64,000 nt of DNA from Lepidodermella squamata (lineage: Eukaryota; Animalia; Gastrotricha). The stretch spans positions 1 to 64,000 of the forward strand of contig JBLDXI010000078.1 of the NCBI GenBank assembly GCA_047495785.1, given 5' to 3'. Shown in pieces: positions 114 to 32,658 of this stretch; position 1 is the first letter of the stretch; each line of letters opens with the position of its first letter. A model generated the notes under the pieces. The model was given only the letters and a program-made list of their open reading frames with translations, was not told the DNA's origin and searched no databases. The position numbers were made by a program, and so were the translations under genes.

Positions 114-1841
114 TTAGCCACCTAGTGCCTTCACAACCTCGACGTGGCCATTCTTGATGGCGATGTGCAGTGGCGTACGGCCATCTTTCTCGGCCATATT
201 CACGTCGGCGTTGAACTCGGCGGCCAATACCCTCACCACCTGGACGTGGCCCCTCTCAGCGGCGACGTACAGTGGTGTTTCGTCATCTTTCTCAGCCAAA
301 TTCACGTTGGCGCGGAACTCGCCAGCCAACACCCTAACCACCTCGACCCGGCCCTGGAAGGCTGCGATGTACAGTGGCGTCCAGCCATCTTTGTCGGCCG
401 TATTCACGTCGGCGTTGAACTCGCCAGCCAACACCCTAACCACCTCGACCCGGCCCAGGAAGGCTGCGATGTACAGTGGCGTCCAGCCATTTGTTCTGGC
501 CATATTCACGTTGGCGTTGAACTCGGCGGCCAACACCCTCACCACCTGGACGTGGCCCCTCTCAGCGGCGACGTACAGTGGTGTTTCGTCATCTTTCTCA
601 GCCAAATTCACGTTGGCGCGGAACTCGCCAGCCAACACCCTAACCACCTCGACCCGGCCCTGGAAGGCTGCGATGTACAGTGGCGTTTCGCCATTTTTGT
701 CGGCCATATTCACGTTGGCGCGGAACTCGCCTGCTAACAACCTCACCACCTCGACCCAGCCATGGAAGGCTGCGATGTACAGTGGCGTCCAGCCATTTGT
801 TCTGGCCATATTCACGTTGGCGTTGAACTCGCCAGCCAACACCCTCACCACCTCGACGTGGCCTTCACGGGCGGCGACGTACATAGGCGTCCAGCCATCT
901 GTTTCGGCCATATTCACGTCGGCACGGAACTCACCAGCCAACACCCTCACCACCTCGGCGTGACCATGCATGGCGGCGCCGTGCAGTGGCGTCCAGCCTA
1001 AAATGTTAGCCATATTCACGTCGGCGTGGAACTCGCCAGCCAACACCCTCACCACCTCGACGTGGCCTTCACGGGCGGCGACGTACAGTGGCTTACGGCC
1101 ATCTTTGTCGGCCGTATTCACGTCGGCACGGAACTCACCAGCCAACACCCTCACCACCTCGGCGTGACCATGCATGGCGGCGACGTACAGTGGCGTCCAG
1201 CCATCTTTGTCGGCCGTATTCACGTCGGCGTGGAACTCGCCAGCCAACACCCTCACCACCTCGACGTGGCCTTCACGGGCGGCGACGTACAGTGGCTTAC
1301 GGCCATCTTTGTCGGCCGTATTCACGTCGGCGTTGAACTCGCCAGCCAACACCCTCACCACCTCGACGTGGCCATTACGGGCGGAGATGTGCAGTGGCGT
1401 CCAGCCATCTTTGTTGGCCATATTCACGTCGGCGTTGAACTCGCCAACCAGCGTTCTCACCACCTCGACGTGGCCTCTCCCGGCGGCGGCGTACAGTGGC
1501 GTACTGCCATAATTGGTTGCCATATTCACGTCGGCACGGAACTCGCCAGCCAACACCCTCACCACCTCGACGTGGCCATTCTCGGCAGCGACGTACAATG
1601 GCGTCCAGCCGATATTGTTGGCAATACTCACGTTTGCGTTGAACTCGCCAGCCAACACCCTCACCACATCGACGTGGCCTTTCCCGGCGGAGATGTGCAG
1701 TGGCGTCCAGCCATCTTTGTTGGCCATATTCACGTCGGCGTTGAACTCGCCAACCAACGTTCTCACCACCTCCACCAGGCCATTCTCGACGGCGATGAAC
1801 AGAGGCGTACGGCCATTTGCATTACGAAACTCAATGTCTGC
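114..1841 (-). repeat. Tandem array of ~17 x 102-bp (34-aa) ankyrin repeats
   Basis: Mirror of 20732-22459. Confidence 0.97.
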
Positions 1842-2069
1842 CTCGAACTGTCTAACCAGAAGTCGTTGTAGCCTGCCCGAGCAGCGAGGTACAACAGCGG
1901 AAACCCTTCTTCGTCTTCGCAGTTAGCGCTAAGGCCGACATCACTGTTCGCCAGTAACTGCACCAATTTCAACAAGTCCTTCCGCCGACATACGCAGTCG
2001 AACAGCTCCTAGTAATAAGTACATAGTAATTTACAACACATGGATCAAGTGTGAAAGGTAAAATAATCC

Positions 2070-2631
2070 CATAGAAAACTCTATACATGTCAGAAAGTAA
2101 CGATCTTCCTATAGTAAATAAATTCACAGCATAACGTGGAAAAGTAGGCACGCGACCTTCGTTTTAATACTCATCGCCGTACTCCGCCCATTGAAATTTT
2201 TCGATTTTCAATTATTTTCGAAAATTCCGAGAGAAAATCTTTGATTTCCTAAATATTCCAAAAAAAATTCCGGAATACTAGAAGCGCTGCTCTATCGAAT
2301 GAATCCCGTCTCATGCGACGGTTCATCTTCCAACTTTTTTTTAAATTGTCTCAAAGTTGGTCACTTTTACGAACTATCGAGTCTTTCAAGGCGGTAAAAA
2401 TTTTTATTTTACGCCGAAAAATTCCGAGAAAAATGATATGATCTTATTTGACTTTTGCCCGGTCCAACGATATAAAACTTGAACAAATCAGAATTTTTGT
2501 ATTTTTTAACCATTTTGTAGCTACTTTTAACTAGCTCAGTTTATTATCAACCTAACGCGTGATAGACAATTCAGAAAATTGTGATATTATAGGAAGATCC
2601 TTACTTTCCGATCTGTATAGAGTTATCTATG
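2070..2631. mobile_element. P-element-like MITE, 562 bp, intronic
   Basis: Termini CATAGA...TCTATG, ~44-bp imperfect TIRs (CATAGAwAACTCTATACA...GATCTTCCTATA), perfect 8-bp TSD AATAATCC at 2062-2069 and 2632-2639. The P-like label is inferred from CATAG ends plus an 8-bp TSD. Confidence 0.85.
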
Positions 2632-5600
2632 AATAATCCGAACATACCCTAACAGCATCTTCGTTTGGTTCCGCGACTGATTGGTCAGGCTGAAGAATTT
2701 GCATGGATGTCACAATGCAGATGCCATTTTTGGATTACTATAATCATACCTTCGTATATCGCATGGGTGCTGATTTCAACAGAAAACTGTTCTGTTGAAG
2801 CAGAGTTGAGGTCGGTCGATCGCCTGGAGTTACGGCGAGCATTGACAAAACGAAATCCCGGAATTCATCCGAATAGCCGCGGGAAGGGTCAAATGGCTTC
2901 ATATTATTACTAAAACATAACACATTTCAGCCTGCTGAAACTGATTCAACTCGCCGGTTTACCTCAAAACATCCACCGTTGTGGTGAACTGTAAAAAAAT
3001 ATTGAAACTTGTTGAGTGATTTCGTAGGTTCATTATCATACCGGTTCTTTGAAGTTGGCTAGTTTGAAGAGCGCAAATCCCAACGACCAAACATCACTTG
3101 CAGGTGATTTCGGTTCAAAGCTCCATACCTCAGGAGGTGAAATCCCCCACTTTGCTAGATAATACGTTTTGGAGCCCCTGTTTGGAATATGACATAATAA
3201 CGGTTAAATGCCCCTTTTCAGTCTTACTTTTCCAATTTCCCGAGGATTCCCAAGTCAGCTAGTTTCGCCGTGCCACGGTCATCGCTAAGTAGTACGTTTC
3301 TTGACGTTATGTTGCGATGAACAATACTTTGGCCGTGAAGATAAGCCAAAGCTGATACGACTTGGCGTGACCATATTTGAAGCATAATTTCCGGGATGGG
3401 TGCTGTTTCAGTCTCGACCAAGCTTTCGAAACTTCCTCCCTCACAATACTCCATCACTAAATATTTCATCGTGCAGTTGTGAGAATAAAAATCTTGACCG
3501 GAATAGGTTCCTGTAGTCGGAATATTATTACTAAGAACTAATGGATGTAGGAATTTACCTTCGAAAGCGTCAAACACCTTGACAATGTTTGCATGGATGA
3601 TATTGACCATTAACAAATCCTGAAATTCGAAAAATTAAAAAAAATTTATTTAGATTTACAGACTCTTCCCAACATAAGGCGCCGTTGTACAGCAATATTT
3701 TTACAAAATTTGTGTCATTTGAGACAATGGTCACCATCCTTAAACATCATTTTAGAACGCTGAAAACAGGTCTATATAGTAACTTTTCGAGCCGCACATT
3801 TTCCAGTTTTTTAATTCAAGTCTAACTCGTCGAAAACTGGGCCTAAATGACATAAAACAGCTTAAATTGCCGAATTTTTAGTAGAAAATGTGATTTTCGG
3901 AATCAGCGATTTTTTAACCCTAGAAATGAGTTGAAAAACAATTCAAAAAAATTCAATTCGATTCACAAAAATTTATTTTTTGCTAATTGCCGGTTGCGGT
4001 TGGCTAATTGAGAGAAAAAACGGTAACCAGTGTGCAGAGCGTCATCGATTACCCACCTACTGGGTTGTGTTTTTAATGGCAAAATCGCAATTTTAAAGGG
4101 GGCAACCATTGTGTTGAAAATTTCTCAGTTTTCTGAATGGGTGAATGACGGCGCCCGTATGAAAGTAAGTAAAAATGGAGACCCATCCCAAGGCATATAT
4201 TTATTGATGGGAACTCACTCTTTCGTGGAGAAGTTCAGCAATTCTGTCAAAGTCTTTATCAAATTCCTTGCGAAAGTTTGTAATGTTGGTTTCTTTGATA
4301 ACTACTTGCTCCTGAAAGCTCCCGTTACGTTTGTACAAATAAGATTGTCGTAGGCTGCCATGACACAGGAGTTTAACAACAGTGAACTCCGACATAGATC
4401 GATACGTCCTTGGTTCCATATTCAATACGAAGCTGAAAATGATGACAGAATGAAAAGCAGGCAGAAATAGGAATAAAGCTTCAATAATGAGCGACATTAT
4501 AATTCTCAGAAGTATCAGCGATAAGAAAACGGCGATACCGCGGGGGCTCGTCATATCATATCTGCCAGAAACGCGCTGAAATTTGAAACATTATGTGTAT
4601 ACCCTTATCTCATGGAGAGGTTCGCCGGTGTTACAGAGAACTCTTTGCTTCTTTATCTTTACGACGGCTTCGTTGAACCTTATTCATCTTACATCTCCAT
4701 AGAATGAAAAGCCGACGATTTTATATCACCTTGATGTATTGCTCATAAATAAAAAAATAAAATAAATGATATCGCGTTTAAATGGAAGATGAATAATCCT
4801 TATGACGCAAAAGGCCAGAGTAACTTGTTTTTAAAGTATATCCACGGACTCAATAGTCATCGGCTATTTCTTTCCGTTCCTTCACACTTTTCTAATTTTC
4901 ATTTTTACTTTCGACTTGGTGATTTAGAAGCGGAGTCGGAAAATGAGGGTTTATAAAAAGATACTTGATCTAACTTCCTGAAGTCACTTGAAACGGAATT
5001 AATAGTTAAGGGTTAAGGATGTCATCAAAACTTCACGAATAAATTTACTCCAATAATAGGAACTGATACAATGCTGTCTCTCAAAAGTAAAATGTTTCCT
5101 GAGAGACAGATGGGAATAATGCTACCCAAATGAATTCGCTGCTCAAGTGCGACACCAGTGTGCGACTTTCAGGGCAGATGGGGGGTATCATCCCCCCAGC
5201 TCGGCCGAAACTTCGACATTTTCCATTCAATTTTCATCTTTCACGCTTCGCGTTTCACATTCACCTTTTTTCATTCATTCAATATTCTCACGACTGTTTT
5301 TTGCGTGATTCCATATCGGCACATGCCTAATAGCGTGATCTCGCAAATATTTTGTTATACGATAGGCTATGAAATTTGCAGCCTTTTTTAAGGGGATTGA
5401 TCGAAAAGGTTCCAGTGGCAAGGCTGGAATAAGGTTTCCAAACCAACCATCCCATGATAGTTGGATTGAAGGTTCAAACTAATCTTAAACTCAAAACTCT
5501 CCAAAACCATTTAGAAATTAAAGCGCTATAAAGCTTTTATTTTTAGAGTAAATCTGAGTCATATCAACAATTTTTCCAAAAATTCTCATCTGGATTCGTT

Positions 5601-6240: not shown

Positions 6241-7261
6241 TTTTTCAAGATTTAATTTTTAGGTCTAAAGATACACAAAAACTTGTATGTAATTGAAATA
6301 AAAAAGTCTTTCATTACAAATTGACACGAAGTTATAACTGCGCAATGAAAATCAACTAGGCGATTGGAACGAAAATAAAATAATTCAAGGATGGAAAAAA
6401 ACGAGAATACATATACGCTAGCTGGGCACGCGACTGCTACGTGGCATCACCAATAACGCAATAAAAATGTCGGTGAGGTCAAATCGTCAAAACATTCCAA
6501 ATTTTTTACATTTGAAAAAACGTTTTGAATAAGGCGTTGAACACTTCTATAACCGATATAACTCAAGACTCTAGAGGTTTTCTTTTCGTAGTGAAACCGT
6601 CCAGCAGCCGCTAGTAGATTAGAAATTAGAAATTAGAAGCGTAGGTTATCCTTCCAACGTTTCTCCAATTTTTCCATCCGTTTCGGTTTTCAAAACATTC
6701 AAAGTTGAAATGAGAGCCAAAAAGAGGAATTGCATTAAAGCGGAAATGATCACAATTCTTACCAGGCTGCGACCCACAGCTATATAATAACGTTAGTTAT
6801 CGCTATTCTGTGAAGATTTGTGAAGATTAAAGTGTTTACCCTCTCTCCTGTCTGCTTAGTATTGCGCTGCAACGCGCTGCGATCATTTTTTCCCGCGTTT
6901 TGAGTAATTTCACTGAACGCGAAATAATGATGGACCTCATCGAGGTCTAGGGGCACTTTCGAATCGAGCGAAACTACTCTAATCATCTGTTACGATTTGA
7001 TCAAAAAAAATACGCGATGGTTTGGTTCGAAATTTCCTGAAAAATCGTATTTCCGTTTATCGTTAATCGAGACTCATCTCATCACTTGAATATTACATGC
7101 TTGTCCGTGACTCGAAAACGGACACCTTAGTCTGAGCAAGCCATGTGATGCCGTTTATCGAAATAAACAACCCCTGCACACGCGACCTAAATTCGCAGCA
7201 GGAATTAAATGAGCGTTTTATTTCATTCATTTTTTTATTTTAAAATAACCATTTTACATAA

Positions 7262-10937: not shown

Positions 10938-11006
10938 TATAATGAGCCGATTCTTCGATATTCGATAAATTGATCCTAACCTTGAACTGAACTTCTTCTT
11001 TTCATC

Positions 11007-11566
11007 GCAAACTCAGGGTATTATTATTTAGTGTGGCTATCCTCCTGGTTAGTTCGAATTTGAATATGGTTCAGCTTACAGCTAATAAATAATGTTAAGT
11101 GGCTGATTGATAGCGCTGCAAAACGCGTTACGAGCCTTTTTCTTGCGGTTTTCAGCAAATTTGCCGATCCATCTAAATACTAAATAATAAATCGATAAAT
11201 CTCATGGAATTGCGTTTAACACTTTAACTGCCCAAATTACGGCTAAAGTACCGTTGCGGTCGTAACTAAGTATCGGTATTTCTTATCAACTATAAGTTTC
11301 GTTATTTTGTACCGACATTTTTGCGGTTAGAAAATGCCGGTACTTTGTCACGTCATTGCCGGTATTTAGTACCGAATCGAGATTGAAAACTGAAGCACGG
11401 GGCACCTATATCAAAAGTTATAGGTGCAAACCAAATCATTGATGGGATTTTCAAGCTTCCGACTGAGAAATGGCTTCGGAAACCAGATTAGTGCGCGAAT
11501 TAACACTGGTTTTGAACAAAACAATATACTATATCGAGATAATTATGCTATAATGCGCCTAGTTGA
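11007..11566. other. Unique 560-bp spacer of the palindrome
   Basis: No self-complementarity; AATAAA near 11084 and 11186 on + could serve the left-arm lectin gene. Confidence 0.93.
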
Positions 11567-11635
11567 GATGAAAAGAAGAAGTTCAGTTCAAGGTTAGGAT
11601 CAATTTATCGAATATCGAAGAATCGGCTCATTATA

Positions 11636-14600
11636 TTACATGATAATATATTTCTCGCAGACGACATAAGGAGCTGTATCGGTACAGTTCTGCAGTACAT
11701 AGAAGTACCCACCAGGTGTACCTGGATAATTTTCAGGCGTTGGTGCATGTTTCACAATGAAGCAAAGCTCCACTGGCGTTGTACTGAAGTAGGGAAAGTA
11801 ATCAATGTAAGAAAAAGGGCGAATCGTGCCGTCTTCATAAATCATGTTGTTATCATCACCAGCAGGTTTCCTTAAGCCAATCCACGCTTTGTAATTGTCA
11901 GGGTTAAGTTGATCCTGTTCAACTTTTTCACTGCTAGCCAGCAAGATAGCCTCTCTCGTTTCAAAGGTTTTCGGCATAGCAATTTGAGCGTTGTTGCTAC
12001 GGCATAGATCGATAGCTGCAGTTCGTGTCATTTCACTTCCTCCTAGAATCAGAAACTCCTTGCTGGCTGAGTCGCAAATTCGATTGTTCCAAGACGATGG
12101 ATATTTCGTTTCGCCTTCGAAGCATCGGCTCGTTCGACAGTTGATTGATTGATCCGGCGCAACGCAGCTGAACAATCTGAAACAGAAAACCCATAATGAA
12201 ACGAGAATAAAGCGAAATACCCTGCTTCAGTGTGTGAGGTACCAGGGGTACAAGGGGAGGGGTTGACCTTAATTACCAAGTAGAAACCGTCCGTTTTTTT
12301 TAAATTCAGGTTCAAAGTTCAAACGAACCCGTTGAAAGAATTAGATTATAGGGATATATTTTAATTCTAAAACTCACGGTGTAGCACATATTTCGAACGT
12401 GGTGTAGCGAATTATCGTACTGCTAGAAGAGTCCAGTGTCTATCGACATTTTTCCAAAAATTCACAACCTTCCATATGCAATAATTCGCGTTGAACCTAC
12501 CGTTCCAGGGGGACATGAAAATTCATAAGGAATGCAAACAGCGGAGAAATTGGTCGCAGCATCAACACATCGAACGTATGATGGCTAAAATTTGAATATA
12601 CGGACAAATGAAGGGATGAAAACATAATTGCTCAGATAAATTGCCTGAATTTTCATCTGGCACGTATTCAAATTATCAGATTGTAGAGACTCCGTTTCAC
12701 CGAACGTGCTAACCTATTAATGCAAAATTTGAGCTTTTATATTAGAAAAATATGTCACGACCTTACTTCGAATTTGCCTGCTGGGCAGGTTTCCTCGCAG
12801 CCACCACCTTTGATAGGATCAAAGCACATTTTCACGATCTGATGAAACGGGAATTAGAGTCAACCAGTTTTAGCCATTTCGAAAAACTGACCCCGGTTTT
12901 AACCTCTGCGACCTTCTCGCAGATGGCGAATTTTGACGTGCCATTGCATAAAATCGCATCGTAGCGAAATTCCGTGAAATAGTTGTCATACATCATGCCG
13001 ACGCAAATATCGATTGGCTCAAAGTAGATGGAAGCATTTGTAACAACCACGGGCGAACTCCATTGGTAGGGCTTGAAATCATAAGTTGTTCCGTCGTCCC
13101 AAATAAGTGATAAATTGGCGTATTTCTTCAAGCCAACCCACGTTGTGAAATCGGCTGTGGCCATGTCGGCCTGAGACAATTTTAACGCGATGGCTCTCTT
13201 CTGATCATCGAAATCATATCTGGTCTTCTGCATCGCTGGTTTGGCTTCGTTAGCGACGCATAGCGCAGAAGCGGCGCCTCGAGTCAGGTCGGCAGATCCT
13301 CCATAGATGAAAAACTGCCTCTTCGCGACTTGGCACTTGTACAGGGATGAAAATGAAGCCGCCGCTGGGTTGCGGGTTTCAGTCGGTAAGCAAATGGTTT
13401 TTCGGCAATTGACGGATCCGTCGGAAGCTTCACATCTTACATACCTAGCAATAAGAATTAATATATACATAATGGCCTTTGTTTTGATTAGAACATTTGG
13501 AAGTTCCGCAGCCCAGAAATAGTTCTCAAACCTTTCACGGCGGGAACGAGGATTTAGGAACTTCGACTTTATTGACAGTGCACCATGATTTCAATTTGTT
13601 ACATTTAATTAGTATTTAGGATAGTTCTTAACTTATGAACCTGAATCGCAGCCCCTAGTTCAATAGAACTATGTGAAAACACCAAAAGGCCTAAAGGGGG
13701 AACCTTTGGTTATAAAACTTGAGCCCGAAAATACCCCCGATATCTGCCACTGAATAAAACCCAAATATGGGTGATATCGATGGATATTCGGCCAGGCCAG
13801 GGTGCAAACCCCAGCTTCAGGAATTCAACAAGAGGAAGGCTGAAAAACAACAGGGAGGACCATTTGGTTTCTTCGGCTGGGGACTAGAAAACATCTCGGT
13901 TTCAGGATCCTACCGCACATTGCTCGGCCTTCAGGCCAATATTTTGTAAAAATTATCATCTCAAACCCGTTCATAGTCGCCTGCTTCGCCAGACAGTTCG
14001 CGTAATTGCTCGTAAAATCGGTGCTGTTAACGAAAGTTGTAACCTAAATGAAAGTGATGGCATGAAGATAGTAACAGAAGGGTTTGGCCAGAGTATTTAC
14101 TAGTGTGAACGGAGACGGGCATCGGCTACGGCAAACCAATTCGCTGGACGTCGAACACAACGCGGCTGGCTGTAAAATAATGAGCCGTAAATTCATGAAC
14201 ATTTCAGAAAAATTCGACTCACCCCAGTCAGGCAGCGCGCTTTATCAGCAAACGTTTCCGGGCTATAGTCCTAAATTCATAATTTAGCAATATTAATTGA
14301 ATTCGTTCAACGAATCACTAACCCTAGTCATGAGAGCCGCGTCGCATTGGGTTGGCTGGCAGCCAACAAAGGAGCAATCGCTTTTTGAAAAGCATCGCAG
14401 GTTTGTTGAAAAATCGCTCGTATTTCTGACGACTTCAAAGATAAATGCCGCTTAATGGGACGACGATTAGAATCGAAATTCAATCTTACTGTTCGCGGCA
14501 GTCATACAAGCCTGAGTACCTTCTTCCCAGTATGCCAGCAAGGTCTACAAAAAAGAAAAGTATTAGAAACTTCAACAATGAAATGGTAGAATTTACCCAG

Positions 14601-15311
14601 TTGTTGGGACATTTGCCAATAAATGGGATGCAGATGGATTTTCTGTTGTCATCGCATTGCGTAGCTGGGAAGGTCTGTGAAACACAATCACAATTTAAAT
14701 ATTACCAGAACGTTTGCGGGTAGAAACCAGAAAATTCCGAATTTCGGCACGGCAGGATTTGTACATGGCGCCAAAAATGTTGCCGATGTATCTTTTGATC
14801 TGAAAAGCGAGGATATTTCAGAAAATTATTCTCCAAGCGATACTATTAAAGAAAAAATTTCGATCGATTGTTGAGATTTTTTATAAAAGAATTGTTTAAA
14901 CATAAATTATTTTATCAATTCGATTTGATAATGGAACCTCGATTTCATCAGCGGAACAGCTCATCTTGCCAGGCAGACATCTCATGTTGATTGTTTTGTA
15001 GTTGAAACAGCTTCGAGCCCACTGTTGGAACAATATGCGATACGAACCAGAAATGATCGAATGAAACTCACTCCAGTTTTGCATGCTGACAAGGTCGCAA
15101 AAGTTCCTCCGAGCTGGGGAAGAGCAAATTTATCAGAAATGTTGGGAATTATTGGACAAATTTAGAGCACCTGATACTCTTGAAGAATCAAGCATTGGGT
15201 TTTGCAGCCATTGAATGCGTCATTCGTCCGCGAGATGCATCGCACGTACGCAGCTGCATCGGCTGACTGAATCAGACCGATAATAACACAAATAATAGCC
15301 AATGTTGTCAT
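11636..15311 (-). CDS. Secreted Cys-rich / double C-type lectin protein, right-arm copy
   Basis: Exact mirror of 7262-10937. Confidence 0.8.
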
Positions 15312-16332
15312 TTATGTAAAATGGTTATTTTAAAATAAAAAAATGAATGAAATAAAACGCTCATTTAATTCCTGCTGCGAATTTAGGTCGCGTGTGCAGG
15401 GGTTGTTTATTTCGATAAACGGCATCACATGGCTTGCTCAGACTAAGGTGTCCGTTTTCGAGTCACGGACAAGCATGTAATATTCAAGTGATGAGATGAG
15501 TCTCGATTAACGATAAACGGAAATACGATTTTTCAGGAAATTTCGAACCAAACCATCGCGTATTTTTTTTGATCAAATCGTAACAGATGATTAGAGTAGT
15601 TTCGCTCGATTCGAAAGTGCCCCTAGACCTCGATGAGGTCCATCATTATTTCGCGTTCAGTGAAATTACTCAAAACGCGGGAAAAAATGATCGCAGCGCG
15701 TTGCAGCGCAATACTAAGCAGACAGGAGAGAGGGTAAACACTTTAATCTTCACAAATCTTCACAGAATAGCGATAACTAACGTTATTATATAGCTGTGGG
15801 TCGCAGCCTGGTAAGAATTGTGATCATTTCCGCTTTAATGCAATTCCTCTTTTTGGCTCTCATTTCAACTTTGAATGTTTTGAAAACCGAAACGGATGGA
15901 AAAATTGGAGAAACGTTGGAAGGATAACCTACGCTTCTAATTTCTAATTTCTAATCTACTAGCGGCTGCTGGACGGTTTCACTACGAAAAGAAAACCTCT
16001 AGAGTCTTGAGTTATATCGGTTATAGAAGTGTTCAACGCCTTATTCAAAACGTTTTTTCAAATGTAAAAAATTTGGAATGTTTTGACGATTTGACCTCAC
16101 CGACATTTTTATTGCGTTATTGGTGATGCCACGTAGCAGTCGCGTGCCCAGCTAGCGTATATGTATTCTCGTTTTTTTCCATCCTTGAATTATTTTATTT
16201 TCGTTCCAATCGCCTAGTTGATTTTCATTGCGCAGTTATAACTTCGTGTCAATTTGTAATGAAAGACTTTTTTATTTCAATTACATACAAGTTTTTGTGT
16301 ATCTTTAGACCTAAAAATTAAATCTTGAAAAA

Positions 16333-16972
16333 ATGGATACAGGGGTGTTGGATCTATCGCGAAAAAAGGCGACTATCATTTCAATAACCACGATAGCACC
16401 ATGGGCTTCCAAGGTAGCAGATTCCAACTTGGTAACATTCAGCTCAGAGCGGAAATCAGCTTTTCAACCTTACTCAAGGACTCGAACCCCATGTGAAACT
16501 GCACCATTTAGTTCCGAAGATTCCCAGAGGCCGCTGGTAAGGTTCAGTAACTTTTACTATCACGTTGCTAATCATCTTGTTCTTACAGGTCAACCCTTTA
16601 TCCGAATCTTGCGTCGAAATGAAGTCAAATTTGCACACCAAGAAGCCTTTGAATTCAGTTTTTGTATGCGATTACTGTCCCAAACGCCGGGTTTATACCA
16701 CGCGTAACGGCTTTCGGCTTCACGTTAGAGCTCACCATTTCGAGAAATTTGCCATGACGTGCTTCACGTGTTCGCGGCTGTTTGAGAACGCCGCTCAGCT
16801 GCGAATTCACTTGTATCAGCACAGGAGATCAGCACAGCTTTCGACCAAACGAGGATCGGCAGCATCGCAAGTAAATTCCTCGCCCAAAGGCTCTTTGAAC
16901 TCTGAGATTTATTCCCCTGATCGAGTCTCGCCAAGTACAACCATTAATGATGAATTCATAGAGGTTGATTGA
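16333..16972 (+). CDS. Two-finger C2H2 zinc-finger protein (~195 aa), probable repressor
   Basis: Exons 16333-16536 and 16589-16972 (GT-AG, phase 0); fingers CDYC..HVRAHH and CFTC..HLYQH; N-terminal VLDLS resembles the PxDLS CtBP-binding motif. Confidence 0.88.
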
Positions 16973-19941
16973 AACGAATCCAGATGAGAATTTTTGGAAA
17001 AATTGTTGATATGACTCAGATTTACTCTAAAAATAAAAGCTTTATAGCGCTTTAATTTCTAAATGGTTTTGGAGAGTTTTGAGTTTAAGATTAGTTTGAA
17101 CCTTCAATCCAACTATCATGGGATGGTTGGTTTGGAAACCTTATTCCAGCCTTGCCACTGGAACCTTTTCGATCAATCCCCTTAAAAAAGGCTGCAAATT
17201 TCATAGCCTATCGTATAACAAAATATTTGCGAGATCACGCTATTAGGCATGTGCCGATATGGAATCACGCAAAAAACAGTCGTGAGAATATTGAATGAAT
17301 GAAAAAAGGTGAATGTGAAACGCGAAGCGTGAAAGATGAAAATTGAATGGAAAATGTCGAAGTTTCGGCCGAGCTGGGGGGATGATACCCCCCATCTGCC
17401 CTGAAAGTCGCACACTGGTGTCGCACTTGAGCAGCGAATTCATTTGGGTAGCATTATTCCCATCTGTCTCTCAGGAAACATTTTACTTTTGAGAGACAGC
17501 ATTGTATCAGTTCCTATTATTGGAGTAAATTTATTCGTGAAGTTTTGATGACATCCTTAACCCTTAACTATTAATTCCGTTTCAAGTGACTTCAGGAAGT
17601 TAGATCAAGTATCTTTTTATAAACCCTCATTTTCCGACTCCGCTTCTAAATCACCAAGTCGAAAGTAAAAATGAAAATTAGAAAAGTGTGAAGGAACGGA
17701 AAGAAATAGCCGATGACTATTGAGTCCGTGGATATACTTTAAAAACAAGTTACTCTGGCCTTTTGCGTCATAAGGATTATTCATCTTCCATTTAAACGCG
17801 ATATCATTTATTTTATTTTTTTATTTATGAGCAATACATCAAGGTGATATAAAATCGTCGGCTTTTCATTCTATGGAGATGTAAGATGAATAAGGTTCAA
17901 CGAAGCCGTCGTAAAGATAAAGAAGCAAAGAGTTCTCTGTAACACCGGCGAACCTCTCCATGAGATAAGGGTATACACATAATGTTTCAAATTTCAGCGC
18001 GTTTCTGGCAGATATGATATGACGAGCCCCCGCGGTATCGCCGTTTTCTTATCGCTGATACTTCTGAGAATTATAATGTCGCTCATTATTGAAGCTTTAT
18101 TCCTATTTCTGCCTGCTTTTCATTCTGTCATCATTTTCAGCTTCGTATTGAATATGGAACCAAGGACGTATCGATCTATGTCGGAGTTCACTGTTGTTAA
18201 ACTCCTGTGTCATGGCAGCCTACGACAATCTTATTTGTACAAACGTAACGGGAGCTTTCAGGAGCAAGTAGTTATCAAAGAAACCAACATTACAAACTTT
18301 CGCAAGGAATTTGATAAAGACTTTGACAGAATTGCTGAACTTCTCCACGAAAGAGTGAGTTCCCATCAATAAATATATGCCTTGGGATGGGTCTCCATTT
18401 TTACTTACTTTCATACGGGCGCCGTCATTCACCCATTCAGAAAACTGAGAAATTTTCAACACAATGGTTGCCCCCTTTAAAATTGCGATTTTGCCATTAA
18501 AAACACAACCCAGTAGGTGGGTAATCGATGACGCTCTGCACACTGGTTACCGTTTTTTCTCTCAATTAGCCAACCGCAACCGGCAATTAGCAAAAAATAA
18601 ATTTTTGTGAATCGAATTGAATTTTTTTGAATTGTTTTTCAACTCATTTCTAGGGTTAAAAAATCGCTGATTCCGAAAATCACATTTTCTACTAAAAATT
18701 CGGCAATTTAAGCTGTTTTATGTCATTTAGGCCCAGTTTTCGACGAGTTAGACTTGAATTAAAAAACTGGAAAATGTGCGGCTCGAAAAGTTACTATATA
18801 GACCTGTTTTCAGCGTTCTAAAATGATGTTTAAGGATGGTGACCATTGTCTCAAATGACACAAATTTTGTAAAAATATTGCTGTACAACGGCGCCTTATG
18901 TTGGGAAGAGTCTGTAAATCTAAATAAATTTTTTTTAATTTTTCGAATTTCAGGATTTGTTAATGGTCAATATCATCCATGCAAACATTGTCAAGGTGTT
19001 TGACGCTTTCGAAGGTAAATTCCTACATCCATTAGTTCTTAGTAATAATATTCCGACTACAGGAACCTATTCCGGTCAAGATTTTTATTCTCACAACTGC
19101 ACGATGAAATATTTAGTGATGGAGTATTGTGAGGGAGGAAGTTTCGAAAGCTTGGTCGAGACTGAAACAGCACCCATCCCGGAAATTATGCTTCAAATAT
19201 GGTCACGCCAAGTCGTATCAGCTTTGGCTTATCTTCACGGCCAAAGTATTGTTCATCGCAACATAACGTCAAGAAACGTACTACTTAGCGATGACCGTGG
19301 CACGGCGAAACTAGCTGACTTGGGAATCCTCGGGAAATTGGAAAAGTAAGACTGAAAAGGGGCATTTAACCGTTATTATGTCATATTCCAAACAGGGGCT
19401 CCAAAACGTATTATCTAGCAAAGTGGGGGATTTCACCTCCTGAGGTATGGAGCTTTGAACCGAAATCACCTGCAAGTGATGTTTGGTCGTTGGGATTTGC
19501 GCTCTTCAAACTAGCCAACTTCAAAGAACCGGTATGATAATGAACCTACGAAATCACTCAACAAGTTTCAATATTTTTTTACAGTTCACCACAACGGTGG
19601 ATGTTTTGAGGTAAACCGGCGAGTTGAATCAGTTTCAGCAGGCTGAAATGTGTTATGTTTTAGTAATAATATGAAGCCATTTGACCCTTCCCGCGGCTAT
19701 TCGGATGAATTCCGGGATTTCGTTTTGTCAATGCTCGCCGTAACTCCAGGCGATCGACCGACCTCAACTCTGCTTCAACAGAACAGTTTTCTGTTGAAAT
19801 CAGCACCCATGCGATATACGAAGGTATGATTATAGTAATCCAAAAATGGCATCTGCATTGTGACATCCATGCAAATTCTTCAGCCTGACCAATCAGTCGC
19901 GGAACCAAACGAAGATGCTGTTAGGGTATGTTCGGATTATT

Positions 19942-20503
19942 CATAGATAACTCTATACAGATCGGAAAGTAAGGATCTTCCTATAATATCACAATTTTCT
20001 GAATTGTCTATCACGCGTTAGGTTGATAATAAACTGAGCTAGTTAAAAGTAGCTACAAAATGGTTAAAAAATACAAAAATTCTGATTTGTTCAAGTTTTA
20101 TATCGTTGGACCGGGCAAAAGTCAAATAAGATCATATCATTTTTCTCGGAATTTTTCGGCGTAAAATAAAAATTTTTACCGCCTTGAAAGACTCGATAGT
20201 TCGTAAAAGTGACCAACTTTGAGACAATTTAAAAAAAAGTTGGAAGATGAACCGTCGCATGAGACGGGATTCATTCGATAGAGCAGCGCTTCTAGTATTC
20301 CGGAATTTTTTTTGGAATATTTAGGAAATCAAAGATTTTCTCTCGGAATTTTCGAAAATAATTGAAAATCGAAAAATTTCAATGGGCGGAGTACGGCGAT
20401 GAGTATTAAAACGAAGGTCGCGTGCCTACTTTTCCACGTTATGCTGTGAATTTATTTACTATAGGAAGATCGTTACTTTCTGACATGTATAGAGTTTTCT
20501 ATG
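19942..20503. mobile_element. P-element-like MITE (mirror copy)
   Basis: Mirror of 2070-2631; TSD GGATTATT. Confidence 0.85.
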
Positions 20504-20731
20504 GGATTATTTTACCTTTCACACTTGATCCATGTGTTGTAAATTACTATGTACTTATTACTAGGAGCTGTTCGACTGCGTATGTCGGCGGAAGGACTTG
20601 TTGAAATTGGTGCAGTTACTGGCGAACAGTGATGTCGGCCTTAGCGCTAACTGCGAAGACGAAGAAGGGTTTCCGCTGTTGTACCTCGCTGCTCGGGCAG
20701 GCTACAACGACTTCTGGTTAGACAGTTCGAG

Positions 20732-22459
20732 GCAGACATTGAGTTTCGTAATGCAAATGGCCGTACGCCTCTGTTCATCGCCGTCGAGAATGGCCTGGTG
20801 GAGGTGGTGAGAACGTTGGTTGGCGAGTTCAACGCCGACGTGAATATGGCCAACAAAGATGGCTGGACGCCACTGCACATCTCCGCCGGGAAAGGCCACG
20901 TCGATGTGGTGAGGGTGTTGGCTGGCGAGTTCAACGCAAACGTGAGTATTGCCAACAATATCGGCTGGACGCCATTGTACGTCGCTGCCGAGAATGGCCA
21001 CGTCGAGGTGGTGAGGGTGTTGGCTGGCGAGTTCCGTGCCGACGTGAATATGGCAACCAATTATGGCAGTACGCCACTGTACGCCGCCGCCGGGAGAGGC
21101 CACGTCGAGGTGGTGAGAACGCTGGTTGGCGAGTTCAACGCCGACGTGAATATGGCCAACAAAGATGGCTGGACGCCACTGCACATCTCCGCCCGTAATG
21201 GCCACGTCGAGGTGGTGAGGGTGTTGGCTGGCGAGTTCAACGCCGACGTGAATACGGCCGACAAAGATGGCCGTAAGCCACTGTACGTCGCCGCCCGTGA
21301 AGGCCACGTCGAGGTGGTGAGGGTGTTGGCTGGCGAGTTCCACGCCGACGTGAATACGGCCGACAAAGATGGCTGGACGCCACTGTACGTCGCCGCCATG
21401 CATGGTCACGCCGAGGTGGTGAGGGTGTTGGCTGGTGAGTTCCGTGCCGACGTGAATACGGCCGACAAAGATGGCCGTAAGCCACTGTACGTCGCCGCCC
21501 GTGAAGGCCACGTCGAGGTGGTGAGGGTGTTGGCTGGCGAGTTCCACGCCGACGTGAATATGGCTAACATTTTAGGCTGGACGCCACTGCACGGCGCCGC
21601 CATGCATGGTCACGCCGAGGTGGTGAGGGTGTTGGCTGGTGAGTTCCGTGCCGACGTGAATATGGCCGAAACAGATGGCTGGACGCCTATGTACGTCGCC
21701 GCCCGTGAAGGCCACGTCGAGGTGGTGAGGGTGTTGGCTGGCGAGTTCAACGCCAACGTGAATATGGCCAGAACAAATGGCTGGACGCCACTGTACATCG
21801 CAGCCTTCCATGGCTGGGTCGAGGTGGTGAGGTTGTTAGCAGGCGAGTTCCGCGCCAACGTGAATATGGCCGACAAAAATGGCGAAACGCCACTGTACAT
21901 CGCAGCCTTCCAGGGCCGGGTCGAGGTGGTTAGGGTGTTGGCTGGCGAGTTCCGCGCCAACGTGAATTTGGCTGAGAAAGATGACGAAACACCACTGTAC
22001 GTCGCCGCTGAGAGGGGCCACGTCCAGGTGGTGAGGGTGTTGGCCGCCGAGTTCAACGCCAACGTGAATATGGCCAGAACAAATGGCTGGACGCCACTGT
22101 ACATCGCAGCCTTCCTGGGCCGGGTCGAGGTGGTTAGGGTGTTGGCTGGCGAGTTCAACGCCGACGTGAATACGGCCGACAAAGATGGCTGGACGCCACT
22201 GTACATCGCAGCCTTCCAGGGCCGGGTCGAGGTGGTTAGGGTGTTGGCTGGCGAGTTCCGCGCCAACGTGAATTTGGCTGAGAAAGATGACGAAACACCA
22301 CTGTACGTCGCCGCTGAGAGGGGCCACGTCCAGGTGGTGAGGGTATTGGCCGCCGAGTTCAACGCCGACGTGAATATGGCCGAGAAAGATGGCCGTACGC
22401 CACTGCACATCGCCATCAAGAATGGCCACGTCGAGGTTGTGAAGGCACTAGGTGGCTAA
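20732..22459 (+). repeat. Tandem array of ~17 x 102-bp ankyrin repeats, GC-rich, intronless
   Basis: Unit consensus ADVNMAxxxGxTPLYxAAxxGHVEVVRVLAGEFx; repeats 6=8 and 13=16 are identical in protein. Confidence 0.97.
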
Positions 22460-25400
22460 TTAAACGCTAATGTGAATGCTGCAAAGATTGATGGTGCGAA
22501 CCGGCGTTGAAGTCCTCCGCACATCACGGCCATTTATATGTTGCTGGTATTCTTTTTACGATCTACTCAACATCGACGCAGTAGATCGTCGCAATGGGAC
22601 AGCCTTGCGCTGTGCGCTGAGAACTGTCATGCGAGAGCTTTCTACAGATTAAGCGCAAGACTACCGAAATACTCAAACTGCCAAAATAAAAATAGCTCCC
22701 GCCAACATATACCTCCTGGACACAATGACTCAAGAATATCTGGGGAAACGTTGGTGAAACTTTATAGAAAATGACGCGCTGATAAATTGCTATTGCCCAG
22801 CGCCAAACTATATTCCAGAAAAATATGGCTCAAATGTTGCAGAATAAAATCGAAGCTGGATGCGTCATTTCGCCTTGCATCGAGTGTAAAGACGCTAGAT
22901 CGGCGAAAACGTGGCCATGGAATCCGAATGTGACGAAGCAAATTTGACTTTGACGAAAGCGCACCTGGGATTTCAATGTTTTTTTTTATCAAGAAGTAAC
23001 AGTCAAGCGAAGTCCACATTTGCGCGTCATGCGCTAATAAAAGGAAAATAAAAATATTAAATATTAGACATCCGAGAGCTGAAGATATGGTGACCGTAGA
23101 GAATCGTAAATCAGACTTTGTCTGGGTCAAATTGCTCCCGAGAGGCCTTGTTACCGTCATTCGGGGCTATCGCAGGATACGGGGCTATTCGGTAAAAAGT
23201 TTGTTCAATTACTAGAATTAAGCTTACTCAAAAACTATAAAGTCAAAGTCGATAAATTTGTGCAGGGAGCTACCTCGATAGATGACACTTATTCTATCAA
23301 AAGTAGGAGTTCAAAGAGTAAACGGTTATGAAGCTGCAGGCTCACCTTTCAGGTGTAAGTTTAACTCAAGAAAACCCCTGTGTTGCATTGAATTACCTGG
23401 ACCGGAATAGATGATTGCAAGGCTCTCGACCAATTACTTCTGAATCTACGGACGCTTAGGACCTTTGGAAAATTTGAAACTCCCCGATCCGATGCATATT
23501 TTTGTCAATTTAATTGAAACCGAATAGCCCCATCGATAAGCGAAGTTGAAGGGTAATTCTTCCAACATGATTGAATATTCTAATGAGCTGGGTTGTTGGT
23601 ATGTTTCTCGGTAAATTACGCAGACTTTGAATTTAAGAGGCTTGGTAAACTTGTGATTAGGCTTATCGGGTGACAGGCTGATTATGCATTCGGCAATGAA
23701 AATTAAAAATTAATTACAAGTCCCTCGATAAAAGCACTGGGTCGGGAGCCAGACTCGGTCTTTAAACAAGGGAAAGCTATAACGAGGGCTGTAATTGAAT
23801 GCAGGAGCTAAAAATAGACCGTTTCTACGCCTTGAGACAGTTGCCATGCCAACGCGCAGAAAGAGACGGACACCGATTACGTGTCATTACAAATTTCGCT
23901 CGCTAAAGGCCGTTAAACAATGACACTATGAATCATTAGTCGGCTTTGATTTAACTGGTTGGCCTTGTTTTTTTACTCTGATTTCAAGTCCTGCCTGGGG
24001 TTAACGAACAAAAAAACCTGGAATCTCATTATTTCAATTTACTTCAAAAATGCCCAGCTCGTCCGATTTCGCAAACAAATTTCATTTGAAATCACAGCTC
24101 ATTTGACAAAATCAATCACCTTGGTCAAGATTGACCAGAATACTTCTGAATCACCAGCAAATTCAGCCAAACATGCTCAAGATAATGATGTGTTCAATTC
24201 TCAATTCATAACTCATGCTTAATTCGTAGAATTATTTAAAAAACAATCTGAAATTTGAAACAATTAGGATGAAAAATGTATTTTCGACAATTTTTTCGCG
24301 GTTAACCTGACTTTTTCTTTTTTTAAATTCATCGAATTAATGGCATTGAGCAATCACGGACCGATTTCACGGCATAAGACGTGTGGTTCCGTCAAGAGGG
24401 CGTTTAGATTGAATGGAATACATTTGCATCTTCTCAGGCGTGATCTCATTTTCATTCGACTGGCCTATTAAGATCCGAGCAAGGTAAAAATCGGGCAGAA
24501 GCTCCCGCCGCCCCTCCTCGGGATGTTGCGATTTTCAAAGTCAAAATCGAATTATTAAAAGTTGTAAAAAAACCCGTAAAATTAATTGCCAAGGCGTAGA
24601 GCAATGAAATCGTAGTGGCAGCCAGTTTCATGTTAGATCAGGCCTATCGACTATCGAAAATCGGCTAATAATCCAATAACTTAGGACAACTGGAACGAAT
24701 GAAAACGATCTAATTTTATGAGAATAAATCCATTTATCGAAATCAAAATAAATCGTAAAACCAGGACGCGATTCTTCATGATTACGCAACACAGCCGGGA
24801 ACAAAATTGGGGAAACAGTTTCCTTAAAAAAATCACGAATTAAATCCTAATTTGATCATGCTAATAATGCTTGTAAATTGCAAGAGATTTTCTGGCCGGG
24901 AAAAAGCTAAAAAATGAAAAATCAGGGCAATTCAGATGAGTCTTTTAGTTGATCAGCAATTGGCCTGAGGGAAAATCAGAAAATCAAGGAGAGTTAAGAT
25001 TGACGGGCATTTTTATAGTTATTGAAATAAATTGCTGATTTTGTCTGATTAATTGGCGTAATTTCTGATAGAAAAGTTTAACAAAAAAGCAGGAAGACTC
25101 GCAGCGCGACTTGAGTGGCAGCTAATCCCCACACTCTGTTGCATAATCACAGCCATTTCAAAGCCACAAGAGCAGCTTAATGCACTGATGATCTTTCAAC
25201 TCGTTTGAACTAAACTTGAAATAACTGGATCTCCCAAAACCACGACAACGCGCCGCTAGGTTTCCAGGAACGCTTTATTATTTTTATTTTTCACGCTTAA
25301 TTTTTTTAATCTATCAAAAAATTATTATTTGTTTAAATAAAAATTTACAACTAATTTATTTAGCAGGGTCCAAAATTACGGTCTACAAACGAGGGAGTTC

Positions 25401-29182: not shown

Positions 29183-29852
29183 ATGGATACCAGCCATTTA
29201 GAGGTGCTGGATTTATCTCGAAAAAAAGCGGCTATCATTTCAATTTCCACGATAGCTCCATGGGCTCTCAAGGTAGCAGAGTCAAACTTGATCACAATCA
29301 GCTCAGAACGGAGATCAGCTTTTCAGCCTTACTCGGGGACTCGAATCCCATTTGAAAATTCAACAGCTAGTTGCGAAGATTCCCAGAAGCTGCCGGTAAG
29401 GTTCGGTGACTATTACTACTATCTCCTTGTGAATCATCTTTTCCTTGCAGGTCAACCCTTTATCCGGATCTTGTGATGGAAGCGTCGAATTGAACTCAAA
29501 TTCAAATTCAAATTCAAACACCGAGAAGCGTTCGAATTCTGTTTTTGTATGCGATTACTGTCCCAAACGCCGGGTTTATACCACGCGTAACGGCTTTCGG
29601 CTTCACGTTAGAGCCCACCATTTCGAGAAATTCGCCATGACGTGCTTTACCTGTTCGCGGCTGTTTGAGAACGCCGCTCAGCTGCGAATTCACTTGTATC
29701 AGCACAGGAGATCAGCACAGCCTTCGATCAAAAAAGGCTCGGCAGCCTCGCAAGGAAATTTCTCGCCTAAAAGCTCGTTGAACTGGGAGATTACTTCCCC
29801 TGATCCCTCGCCAAGTTCAAGCTATAATGAACAATTCATTAAGGTTGATTAA
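29183..29852 (+). CDS. Diverged paralogue of the C2H2 zinc-finger gene
   Basis: Exons 29183-29395 and 29451-29852; finger region identical in protein to 16333-16972, flanks diverged, short NS-repeat insertion. Confidence 0.88.
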
Positions 29853-30279
29853 AACGGAGGAGGATTATTATAAACAATTGTTGATATATATGACTCAAAT
29901 TTACTTGAATAAATAATAAAGAATTCTTCTTTTTCGGAGAGTTTCGAGTTGAAGATTGGTTTGACGCCTAAATCTAAACTCAACTGCGCCCAGGTCATTG
30001 GCCAGGTCGGGGACCTCTTCCCAACTTTACCTTATACAATCCTTGATCAAAAATATTATACAGTTCTATATTTTTAGACAAAAGACGTTTTTCTGGCGAT
30101 GACCTCTTGGCTTATTATCGGTTTGAAATTACGTCTTTTTATTCATAATTTATCGCATATTTGGACTTTCTCTCAAGGTCGTTAGGCAATAAACGCTGAC
30201 AGTTCATTTTTTGCTGAATTCTTATACCAGGCTAAAATCAAAACTATTGAAGGGCTATTGAAAAAGCAAGTCGGCAGAT

Positions 30280-32658
30280 TTAAGTCACATTTTTAGTTGT
30301 CGGGTGAACAAAATTAATGATTAATGATGAAACAGTTACAGGCACTTCAGAGTAGAACAAATATGGATATCTTGGCACGATGCCAAACAAGAAAATCGGC
30401 GTGATACTAATGAGAAAAACATATGAAAATAAGACAAATCGATCCATAACATCAGCGATGAATTCCCACCGTTGAATGCGATAGATTTCCAGTGTAATTT
30501 GCCGCTCATGATCAGCCTTATCGCTGCCGAACATTTTCTTATCAGGATTCGTCTCAGTCGCGATCTGAATGTCGTGTTGGAAAATCGAATAGAAGCTACT
30601 GCGTAACATTTTCTCACACTCGTCGTGCTGTTCTTCTTTAGTCGTTGGCAGTCTTGGCTTTTTAACGCGAAAAACTGGCGCGAGAAAGCAAGCGGCTTTA
30701 TACAACCACTCCGGTACAACCTGCTGCCGTCTCTGGTCGCGGCTTTTCCGGAAGCAAATGAAGACCAGGCCCTCGCCTAACATAGCTAGGCATATGTAAA
30801 GCATCGATAGATCGATGTAGTAGCACAACAACGGGATCTTGTCCGAGGTTCGAGGTATGTCGTCGATTATCATAAGCTGGAAAACGCCATAGGCCAAGAG
30901 GCAGGTGAAGGACAGCTCCAACTTTTCGCTGTCATCAACCGCAGCGGCGAATGTCGCAACTTCCGCCAGCGAAATTATCAAACTAGGCACGATAACATTG
31001 ATAAGGTAATACCCAATCTTCCTCTGAAGAACGAGGTCGAATTCAACCCGGGAAAACGTATTGGTCGGGATGACGTACTGGACCCGTTTCACCCGTTGAT
31101 CTGTACTAACAAGTGACCACTGTTCGTTCTCGATCCACCACCTTTTCTGAATTGTGTCGCCGAAGTGGAAAACTTGGAATTCGACTGTGTACCGCCAGCT
31201 TTCCATGATCAAAGTGCAGTTTTGGGTGTCGAACGGGAACAATCGAATGTCGAAGTCGCAGAAGGCTTTGAAGGTCCCACCAGGCCGGTATGAGATGTAA
31301 CCGTTGCTTGAGACTCGCACCATTTCCTGGTCGTGCATGAGTAACAGCTCGTAATGTTGTTCAGAGTTTATCATGGCGATTTCAGGGATCCAGATTTGTC
31401 TCTGCGGTGTTGTGACGCTGGGTACGCAGCAGTGGGGAAAGGTTCGGTTCCAGGTGTGAAATTCATCGAACCAATACTGAAATGGAGGACAGGAATGGGA
31501 GGAGGTTTTGAAATTATCGATAAGAAACCTACAAACAGCAGGTATCCAGACAGTTTCAGAGCTTTGTCTCGCTCAATCTAAGAAAATCATTGGTATATAA
31601 AATTGCAATAATTAATCCAGATTTTCTTTCGACGAGCCTTCCTTTTGAAGAGTTCGAGCATAATTTCTGACATCTATGATAATTCTATTTCTGAGGCTTT
31701 GATGGATTGGTGATACTACTCTGATGGATGATGGATTGTTTCCGTCATTAGGACTTGCACCCAGTCCAGATAACCCCTCAGATACACAGTAGCTCATAAA
31801 CTGAGACACGGTACCTCATATTCACGGTGCGAAGGACAGGGATGCTGGGGTGTCGCGACACCCCAGCTCTGGGACTCCAAACCCGAGGAAGGCAGAAGAA
31901 ACCACAGGGGGGATTCTCGGCCAGGTCCCAGAAATTAAGCAGAAAACACCTCAGCTCCCGGATCCTACTTCACACACTGGCCTCTAAATATTGTGATAAT
32001 AAATTTTATCTCACTGTTCTCTATCCCCATTCGTCAAGCTTTATATGTAGTTTCATTTATATGTATAACTCTAAAAGGTTCAGCTTCACAGAAATTCGGG
32101 ATTCAATCTTAATCTTACTCTATCAATTGACCTTGGGACATAAAACTGCGACTTTATCGGAAAGGCTCGAGACCACTGCGAGACCAGCGTAACAGTTGGG
32201 GTTAACGATCCCTAGATTCCGTTTAATTGGAATAAATTGAAGCGGAGAATGGTGAATGGTTCAGGGGTTAGGCAAAAATCTAAACCGGTGTCGCCGAAAA
32301 AGTTGTCAGAACGTTTTTAACGGCTAAAAAATCCGTGTTTGCTTACCACATCGTTGATGGTCGACAAAACGAGGCGAACTTCAATGTTTATCGGCTTGTT
32401 ACTGCGCTTCAGAGGCCTCACCCAAGTCTCATGTTTGCCAAATACGTCTCGCGCGATGATATCCTCACTAATAGAGACATTGCGACACAGCGGCGAATTA
32501 GCTGAAACGGCCTGCTTTAATTTCTGCGGAACTATAACTTCATCGCCGTTTTCGTCTATCGTAACATTGTACCATAAACTCTGGCCTGAAGTTGCTGCGA
32601 TCACGTGAATCACGAAACAGTAGAGAATTTTCGCGAAATTATTCGAGGTCAAAATCAT
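30280..32658 (-). CDS. Cys-loop ligand-gated ion channel subunit A (nAChR-like, non-alpha)
   Basis: Exons 32658-32347, 31577-31533, 31476-30280; signal peptide, VRP, IWIPEI, Cys-loop CDFDIRLFPFDTQNC, M1-M4, M2 SEKLELSFTCLLA; no vicinal CC in loop C. Confidence 0.93.
31823..31979 (-). mobile_element. hAT-like MITE copy in intron 1 of channel A
   Basis: Shares TIR CAGTGTG(C/T)GAAG and the palindrome TGGGGTGTCGCGACACCCCA with the 43060 copy; TSD not preserved. Confidence 0.75.

Follow-up and report, generated by a model that had tools for sequence, protein, structure and literature searches.

A putative pseudokinase gene with a reshuffled ankyrin repeat array in the gastrotrich Lepidodermella squamata

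Organization of the kinase-ankyrin locus

Contig JBLDXI010000078.1 of the gastrotrich Lepidodermella squamata carries a gene in which a kinase domain, predicted to be a pseudokinase, is followed by a tandem array of ankyrin repeats. All coordinates given here are positions in the window, i.e., the whole stretch of 64,000 nucleotides (nt) of this contig that was analysed. The array consists of 17 units of 34 amino acids (102 base pairs, bp), which follow each other without a gap in one frame that starts at 20735. Tandem Repeats Finder detects one array (20757-22442) with a period of 102, 16.5 copies, 81% matches, and a score of 1909, in agreement with the roughly 17 units of 102 bp described in an initial annotation of the stretch. 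The array frame of 1722 nt contains no stops and no indels, and Pfam recognizes 16 full ankyrin repeats in it (PF00023, E-value 7.6e-134; PF12796, E-value 7.5e-169). The units carry the motif TPLY, TPLH, or TPMY and a loop of the form GEFxA(D/N)VN.

The units are similar to each other without being uniform. The mean pairwise identity among units 2-16 is 0.81 at the nucleotide level and 0.71 at the amino acid level, and the amino acid identity to the consensus is 0.79. The synonymous divergence between units (pS, the proportion of synonymous differences) is 0.24, and 12 of the 34 amino acid positions are invariant. With these values, the initial description of a framework whose DNA is shared almost exactly does not hold. 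Identity is much higher between particular units. Units 6 and 8 do not differ at a single nucleotide. Units 13 and 16, which had also been called identical, are so in their amino acids and are separated by one synonymous nucleotide. The block of units 11-13 recurs as units 14-16 with 16 differences in 306 nt, all of which fall within a patch of about 77 nt that starts at nt 56 of unit 14 and ends at nt 30 of unit 15. Unit 15 is itself a mosaic, since its nt 1-42 equal those of unit 7 and its nt 31-102 equal those of unit 12 (clustering, Fisher P 0.001 and 0.0004, respectively). A four-gamete pattern is present in 61 of the 300 pairs of informative sites. The nucleotide comparison, the Fisher tests, and the four-gamete sites thus agree on the shuffling of repeats claimed earlier, and the mosaic unit, the duplicated blocks, and the four-gamete pairs support the part of the accompanying proposal in which recombination reshuffles the units. 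Divergence is greatest in the edge units 1 and 17, which show 21-39 differences from every other unit; this pattern is expected where unequal exchange homogenizes an array.

At the 3' end, the stop codon at 22457 takes the place of the Glu31 codon of the other units. Decayed units lie beyond the stop; therefore, the array was once longer, by at least one or two units. Support from reads was judged by the contigs of one sequencing run, which is possibly the source of the assembly. Exact matches among them extend over 17998-20752 and 22315-22900, and none of the exact contigs listed spans 20752-22315. The only contig at 20882 and 21774 carries a different letter from the assembly at these positions.

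Upstream of the array, the gene comprises six exons with canonical GT-AG sites and introns of 599, 50, 53, 53, and 741 nt, and 355 amino acids are open until a frameshift described below. The glycine loop of the kinase domain is degenerate (LCHGSLRQ), and the VAIK lysine (K72) is retained as VVIKE. The motif HRNITSRN replaces HRDxKxxN, such that the catalytic aspartate (D166) and the lysine are lost and the Mg-binding asparagine is kept. DLG replaces DFG with D184 kept, and PPE replaces APE. The change of HRD to HRN is the substitution used for making kinase-dead mutants; the label pseudokinase is therefore justified at the level of the sequence. An insert of about 30 amino acids precedes beta-5 in exon 2.

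The best matches of exon 2 in the PDB are unspecific: STE20-type kinases, CHK1, and NEK1 score about equally, in addition to pseudokinase domains. The nearest single-domain relative, the database protein P0203, is 38% identical and has the same insert before beta-5. Its motifs are intact (HRDIKPHN, DFG, and GEGGFG), and it matches NEK1 best, with an E-value of 4e-24 against 1e-19 or weaker for other kinases. Because P0203 is closest to NEK1, the kinase family is probably NEK-derived. A tblastn search with nine kinases found no second kinase domain in 11000-20760, so that the gene has one only. Consecutive introns of 50, 53, and 53 nt lie at 19346-19663, and very short introns seem to be typical for this genome. 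The two long introns (introns 1 and 5) contain high-copy interspersed repeats at 18401-18901 and 19904-20571, with contig depths of 1,000-10,000 compared to about 45 for unique sequence.

The array also stands apart by its base composition. Its GC content at third codon positions (GC3) is 0.75, and the part of exon 6 before the shift has a value of 0.70; the kinase exons, by comparison, have 0.44, and four further genes in the window range over 0.48-0.57. This contrast may fit GC-biased gene conversion in a recombination-active array; alternatively, the ankyrin module may have a separate origin. Unequal crossing-over and gene conversion between units account for the growth of the array and for the lasting likeness of its units, as is evident from the mosaic unit, the divergent edges, the duplication of blocks that are one, two, or three units long, and the GC3 of 0.75 against the 0.44 of the kinase exons.

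The initial annotation coupled the array to a pseudokinase. The two do lie in one gene, and the kinase has the HRN motif, but a 1-nt shift places the array out of the kinase frame from about 20713, and the kinase frame meets a stop about 32 codons later. As a result, the locus as written cannot encode a kinase-array fusion protein. The contig over 20451-20752 matches without a difference at a depth of 46, and the contig over 22315-22900 covers the stop of the array (depth 46-50). Exact contigs across the shift place it in the reads and not in the assembly alone, with the reservation that the run may be the source of the assembly. This copy of the gene was probably inactivated recently. The features of the locus are listed in Table 1.

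Table 1. Coordinates of the kinase-ankyrin gene, its array, and its inverted duplicate in the window
Feature	Coordinates	Strand	Evidence or remark
Exon 1: start codon and kinase N-lobe	18154..18354	+	translation; GTGAGT donor at 18355
Exon 2: kinase core	18954..19345	+	Pfam Pkinase, E-value 6e-18; alignments to PDB kinases and P0203
Exon 3: activation segment and subdomain IX, DVWSLG	19396..19531	+	50-nt GT-AG intron before; spliced translation open
Exon 4: 26-nt micro-exon	19585..19610	+	between 53-nt GT-AG introns; frame requires the exon
Exon 5: end of kinase domain (subdomain XI)	19664..19823	+	spliced translation
Start of exon 6, kinase frame: ankyrin N-cap and repeat 0 (EEGFPLLYLAARAGYNDF)	20565..20714	+	
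1-nt frame change between repeat 0 and array	20712..20722	+	three-frame translation
Ankyrin units 1-17	20735..22456	+	one open frame; TAA 22457-22459 inside unit 17
Decayed repeat remnants	22460..22640	+	after the stop; 18th unit decayed, more stops and frame changes
Unique spacer between the arms of the inverted repeat	11025..11549	.	about 0.5 kb
Second identical gene copy	114..4419	-	tblastn, 100% in all exons; array at 105-1838

The gene is located in a perfect inverted repeat. In a self-blastn comparison, positions 1-11006 match the opposite strand of 11567-22572 without a single difference; the left arm is truncated where the window begins. The inverted repeat, which extends over at least 11 kb, duplicates the kinase-ankyrin gene and a lectin-like gene (7262-10937). 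A dispersed repeat of about 0.65-0.7 kb is present in both arms (5537-6232 and 16341-16976) and again at 29200-29916, with 83-84% identity.

The inverted repeat is either a fold-back artefact of the assembly or a very young inverted duplication. An explanation in part by artefact, in which a fold-back created the 11-kb inverted duplicate and mis-assembly possibly created the duplicated blocks of the array, would account for the 100% identity of the arms (11,006 nt or more) around a loop of about 0.5 kb. Exact contigs within the arms have depths of 41-50, which is not obviously doubled and would suit a fold-back, an argument that depends on the single-copy baseline. The interior of the array is without confirmation by exact contigs; the longest exact repeat within it is, however, 152 nt, a length easily spanned by accurate long reads. 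Young palindromes that are kept identical by gene conversion occur in nature, and the array, its frame, and its pattern of variation do not depend on the palindrome. We rate this explanation as quite unlikely for the locus as it is seen; for the inverted repeat by itself, a fold-back artefact has to be taken seriously.

Variable positions and the predicted concave face

The variable residues of the array are at unit positions 4, 6, 7, 8, 10, 15, 18, and 19, and to a lesser degree at 1, 21, and 33. Seven units were modelled by AlphaFold with an alignment of 41 rows, of which 9 were windows taken from the array itself and 32 were ankyrin segments of database proteins. The model is a canonical ankyrin solenoid (predicted local distance difference test, pLDDT, 98.5) with helices at unit positions 12-19 and 22-31. 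Its best matches in the PDB are the extended designed ankyrin repeat protein (DARPin) 6mol, with a template modelling (TM) score of 0.92, a root-mean-square deviation of 1.4, and 48% identity, and ankyrin-1 (7uzu, TM score 0.95). In the predicted structure, positions 4, 6, 7, 8, and 10 belong to the beta-turn and loop and positions 15, 18, and 19 to helix 1, as the initial annotation had supposed in assigning the variation to the beta-turn and the first helix. These are the elements of the classical binding surface of ankyrins; thus, the variable positions sit on the predicted concave, ligand-binding face.

A different fold was obtained from AlphaFold when the 553-amino-acid open reading frame at 20798-22456 was modelled from the single sequence. 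This model is an all-beta solenoid (pLDDT 85.6; predicted TM score 0.85), and its best PDB matches, curli and antigen 43, have E-values above 0.7. It was rejected as an artefact because the alignment-based model is an ankyrin solenoid. The case is a caution against single-sequence structure models of near-perfect repeats.

Surface positions of ankyrins vary in general, and the variation in the array was therefore compared with a generic ankyrin constraint, taken as the per-position entropy over 32 unrelated ankyrin segments. Positions with an entropy of about 3 bits or more were counted as free, of which there are 14-15 in ankyrins generally. The nine free positions on the face side (4, 5, 6, 7, 8, 10, 15, 18, and 19) have a proportion of non-synonymous differences (pN) of 0.41, 1.7 times the pS of the array. 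The free positions on the helix-2 side (22, 27, 30, 31, and 32, with or without 26; n = 5-6) have a pN of 0.07-0.08. The number of amino acid states per position also differs between the face and the helix-2 side (Mann-Whitney P 0.004). Since the helix-2 sites are free in other ankyrins and are nearly fixed here, the asymmetry is not expected from drift, and the face-side excess is real in that it exceeds the generic ankyrin constraint. Amino acid change in the array is thus focused on the beta-turn and helix 1, and the helix-2 side is held constant.

Whether selection has driven the change on the face was judged at the six positions that are randomised in DARPins, which were fixed a priori. 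Relative to the array-wide synonymous rate, their omega is 1.5 when minimum changes are counted without a tree (Poisson P 0.04); on a neighbour-joining tree it is 2.1, a figure that recombination inflates. Units 7 and 9, which are otherwise near-identical, have several face codons that are 2-3 nt apart. Diversifying or positive selection on the face is suggestive only.

Another explanation of the same variation is an ordinary young ankyrin array without diversifying selection, in which recent duplication was followed by drift of the free surface sites, or by relaxed constraint during pseudogenisation. Several observations are in line with it. The overall dN/dS (the ratio of non-synonymous to synonymous rates) is 0.73, codon positions 1, 2, and 3 are nearly equally divergent, and the copy is frameshifted. 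The entropy of the array correlates with the generic ankyrin entropy (Spearman 0.48), and the tree-free omega of the face is just 1.4-1.5, with a P of 0.04. Drift should, however, also alter the free helix-2 sites 22, 26, 27, 30, 31, and 32, where pN is 0.07 against a pS of 0.24. Moreover, a frame of 1722 nt without a stop or an indel implies constraint until recently, and face codons that differ by 2-3 nt between near-identical units such as 7 and 9 also speak against drift. An ordinary young array of this kind is an unlikely explanation, although it retains an appreciable chance.

Family context and proposed interpretation

Over the kinase exons and the array, contigs that match at 90-95% accumulate to about 10 times the depth of the exact contigs. 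At position 18976, for example, eight contigs with variant letters sum to a depth of 521, compared to about 46 for the reference letter. From this excess depth it is reasoned that many close paralogues exist, with summed contig depth being a rough guide to their number; the data indicate a multi-copy gene family in the genome. Database searches returned distant matches. A query with the array against 5.8 billion proteins gave a best identity of about 50%, and a query with the kinase against 1.84 billion representatives gave best matches of 30-53%, in which the top scores came from multi-kinase proteins. Matches in metagenome contigs were 36-39% identical only. Four proteins found with the array query that have both a kinase and ankyrin repeats (P0010, P0018, P0099, and P0105) were considered as relatives and rejected, their kinases being only about 30% identical. 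An undescribed, lineage-specific family is plausible from these comparisons.

Taken together, we regard it as likely, though by no means assured, that the locus represents a lineage-specific, multi-copy family in which a six-exon NEK-like pseudokinase is joined to an ankyrin cap and 17 repeats diversified on their face, and that the copy described here, being frameshifted, was probably inactivated recently. The family members would bind protein partners via the diversifying concave face, and the dead kinase would serve as a scaffold or output module. The present copy is most likely a recently inactivated member of a birth-and-death family, and in the assembly it sits on one arm of the inverted repeat, which is perfect over 11 kb or more.

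Several points weigh against this interpretation. The roles in binding and as a scaffold are ones that we infer from general knowledge of ankyrins and pseudokinases, and the claims at the level of the family rest on contig depth. The selection signal comes from 14 distinct units of one array, in which recombination inflates tree-based counts. The excess of non-synonymous change on which the initial proposal turned is suggested on the face by an omega of 1.5-2.1 and a pN well above that of the helix-2 side; it is tempered by the P of 0.04, by a Fisher P of 0.08 for the contrast of non-synonymous to synonymous changes between the face and the helix-2 side, and by the whole-array dN/dS of 0.73, which, with three codon positions that diverge almost equally, fits relaxed constraint too. 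Two further points concern the frameshift and transcription. A cryptic GT-AG intron of 53 nt at 20669-20721, the sole in-frame bypass recognised, could restore the frame, and its length is that of the usual short introns of this genome. A few low-depth exact contigs at 22021-22103, 22262-22344, and 22596-22804, which come from a run that is possibly RNA, are weak evidence of transcription.

Against such splicing stand the weak donor of the candidate intron, its high GC content, and the ankyrin helices that it encodes in frame. The joints of the possible RNA contigs are not clean enough to confirm introns or the transcription of this copy. What the locus adds to the picture of its family is an array that is well resolved and a gene model that is clean. 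The frameshift, and a duplication that a fold-back in the assembly may have produced, make it a poor basis for claims about function.

Elsewhere in the window, two tandem paralogues of Cys-loop ligand-gated channels lie on the minus strand at 30280-31374 and 34312-35409, with one long open reading frame each. Over 1.25 kb, the DNA identity between the two is about 85%, and their relatives have the Pfam domains Neur_chan_LBD and Neur_chan_memb. Together with the C-type lectin annotation, trypsins, and GT-AG introns, the channels point to an animal genome. The nearest database relatives of these channels are metagenome proteins with at most 60% identity.

Comparison with known systems

The array has been likened to DARPins, with which it shares the fold and, in the case of the extended DARPin, 48% identity. 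The DARPin positions were reportedly randomised by Binz et al. in 2003 because they are variable in natural repeats. We take DARPin positions 2, 3, 5, 13, and 14 to correspond to the variable unit positions 7, 8, 10, 18, and 19. DARPins have six randomised positions per repeat (PMC6590788), and the initial claim that the array varies at these positions is correct for five of the six. The equivalent of the remaining one, position 33, is an invariant alanine here. Unlike in the DARPin design, unit positions 4, 6, and 15 are just as variable, and weaker variation is seen at 1, 21, and 33. The units also have 34 residues instead of 33, the 34th being an insertion at the junction of helix 2 and the loop (LAGEFNADVN). 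Since the randomised positions vary in natural repeats anyway, the overlap with DARPins by itself proves little.

Kinases followed by ankyrin repeats occur in vertebrates as RIPK4 and ANKK1, and the tandem kinase immune receptors of plants use a pseudokinase as a receptor module. The gene described here has the kinase-then-ankyrin order of RIPK4 and ANKK1, but RIP-family kinases are absent from its best PDB matches. With the plant tandem kinases it shares a pseudokinase; these have at least two kinase or pseudokinase domains, whereas one is present here.

The repeats of fungal NLRs, studied in Podospora and others, combine high internal conservation with shuffling and polymorphism of repeat number (Dyrka et al. 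2014, PMC4986451). In their ankyrin repeats, the polymorphic and selected sites occupy the inner helix and the beta-hairpin of the concave face (PMC4986451). Among the ankyrin, TPR, and WD proteins of metazoans, only 0.8% have such highly conserved repeats (PMC4986451). The array resembles the fungal repeats in that its tandem repeats are homogenised by recombination, its units are shuffled, and its variation is on the concave face, and to this extent the likeness pointed out in the initial annotation is upheld. In other respects the two differ. Fungal NLRs have a STAND NTPase of the NACHT or NB-ARC type N-terminal to the repeats, and the only upstream domain here is a protein kinase. The fungal criterion is at least 85% internal amino acid identity across a stretch of 100 amino acids or more, whereas the values here are 0.71-0.79 (0.79 to the consensus), with only some neighbouring units reaching 85%. 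Finally, the host here is an animal.

The domain organization is that of the Nek kinases of Giardia. Of the 198 Giardia Neks, 67% have 1-26 ankyrin repeats behind an N-terminal kinase (Manning et al. 2011, PMC3218828), and 71% of the Neks are without key catalytic residues (PMC3218828). Their ankyrin repeats are divergent from one another and of the TALM type, and the proposed role of these is localisation by cytoskeletal targeting, not recognition or immunity (PMC3218828). Both systems have an N-terminal kinase, mostly dead and of the Nek type in Giardia and probably here, together with a variable ankyrin array, in a large, fast-turning, lineage-specific family. The loss of at least one of K72, D166, and D184 marks pseudokinases of the Giardia type; here D166 is lost. 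Unlike the TALM repeats, the units here are consensus-like TPLY/TPLH repeats of 34 amino acids.

These two comparisons bear on the suggestion that the locus belongs to a dedicated variable intracellular receptor system for immune or non-self recognition, in which shuffling would make new binding faces and the pseudokinase would trigger a response. The face-restricted variation, the mosaic units, and the multi-copy family would suit such a system, and the same evolutionary regime is documented in the ankyrin repeats of fungal NLRs (PMC4986451). On the other hand, this copy is broken, the internal conservation is under the fungal threshold, and the one documented large Nek-ankyrin expansion, that of Giardia, is tied to cytoskeletal targeting and not to immunity (PMC3218828). 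We consider a dedicated receptor system improbable.

The preferred interpretation, a face-diversified pseudokinase-ankyrin family with an inactivated member at this locus, nevertheless leaves room for a bolder idea, to which we give only a slim chance. An animal lineage may have evolved a large NEK-like pseudokinase-ankyrin family independently of Giardia and of the fungal NLRs, as a class of variable binding or sensor proteins that is reshuffled and selected on its face, with this locus as a freshly dead member. Repeats that are homogenised by recombination and have a diversifying face recur in variable recognition, namely in fungal NLRs, in the variable lymphocyte receptors of lampreys, and in the zinc fingers of PRDM9. 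As far as the searches reach, there is no earlier description of an animal ankyrin version that is joined to a dead NEK-like kinase. The family could tell whether animals use such a module for recognition, and it is a potential source of natural DARPin-like binders.

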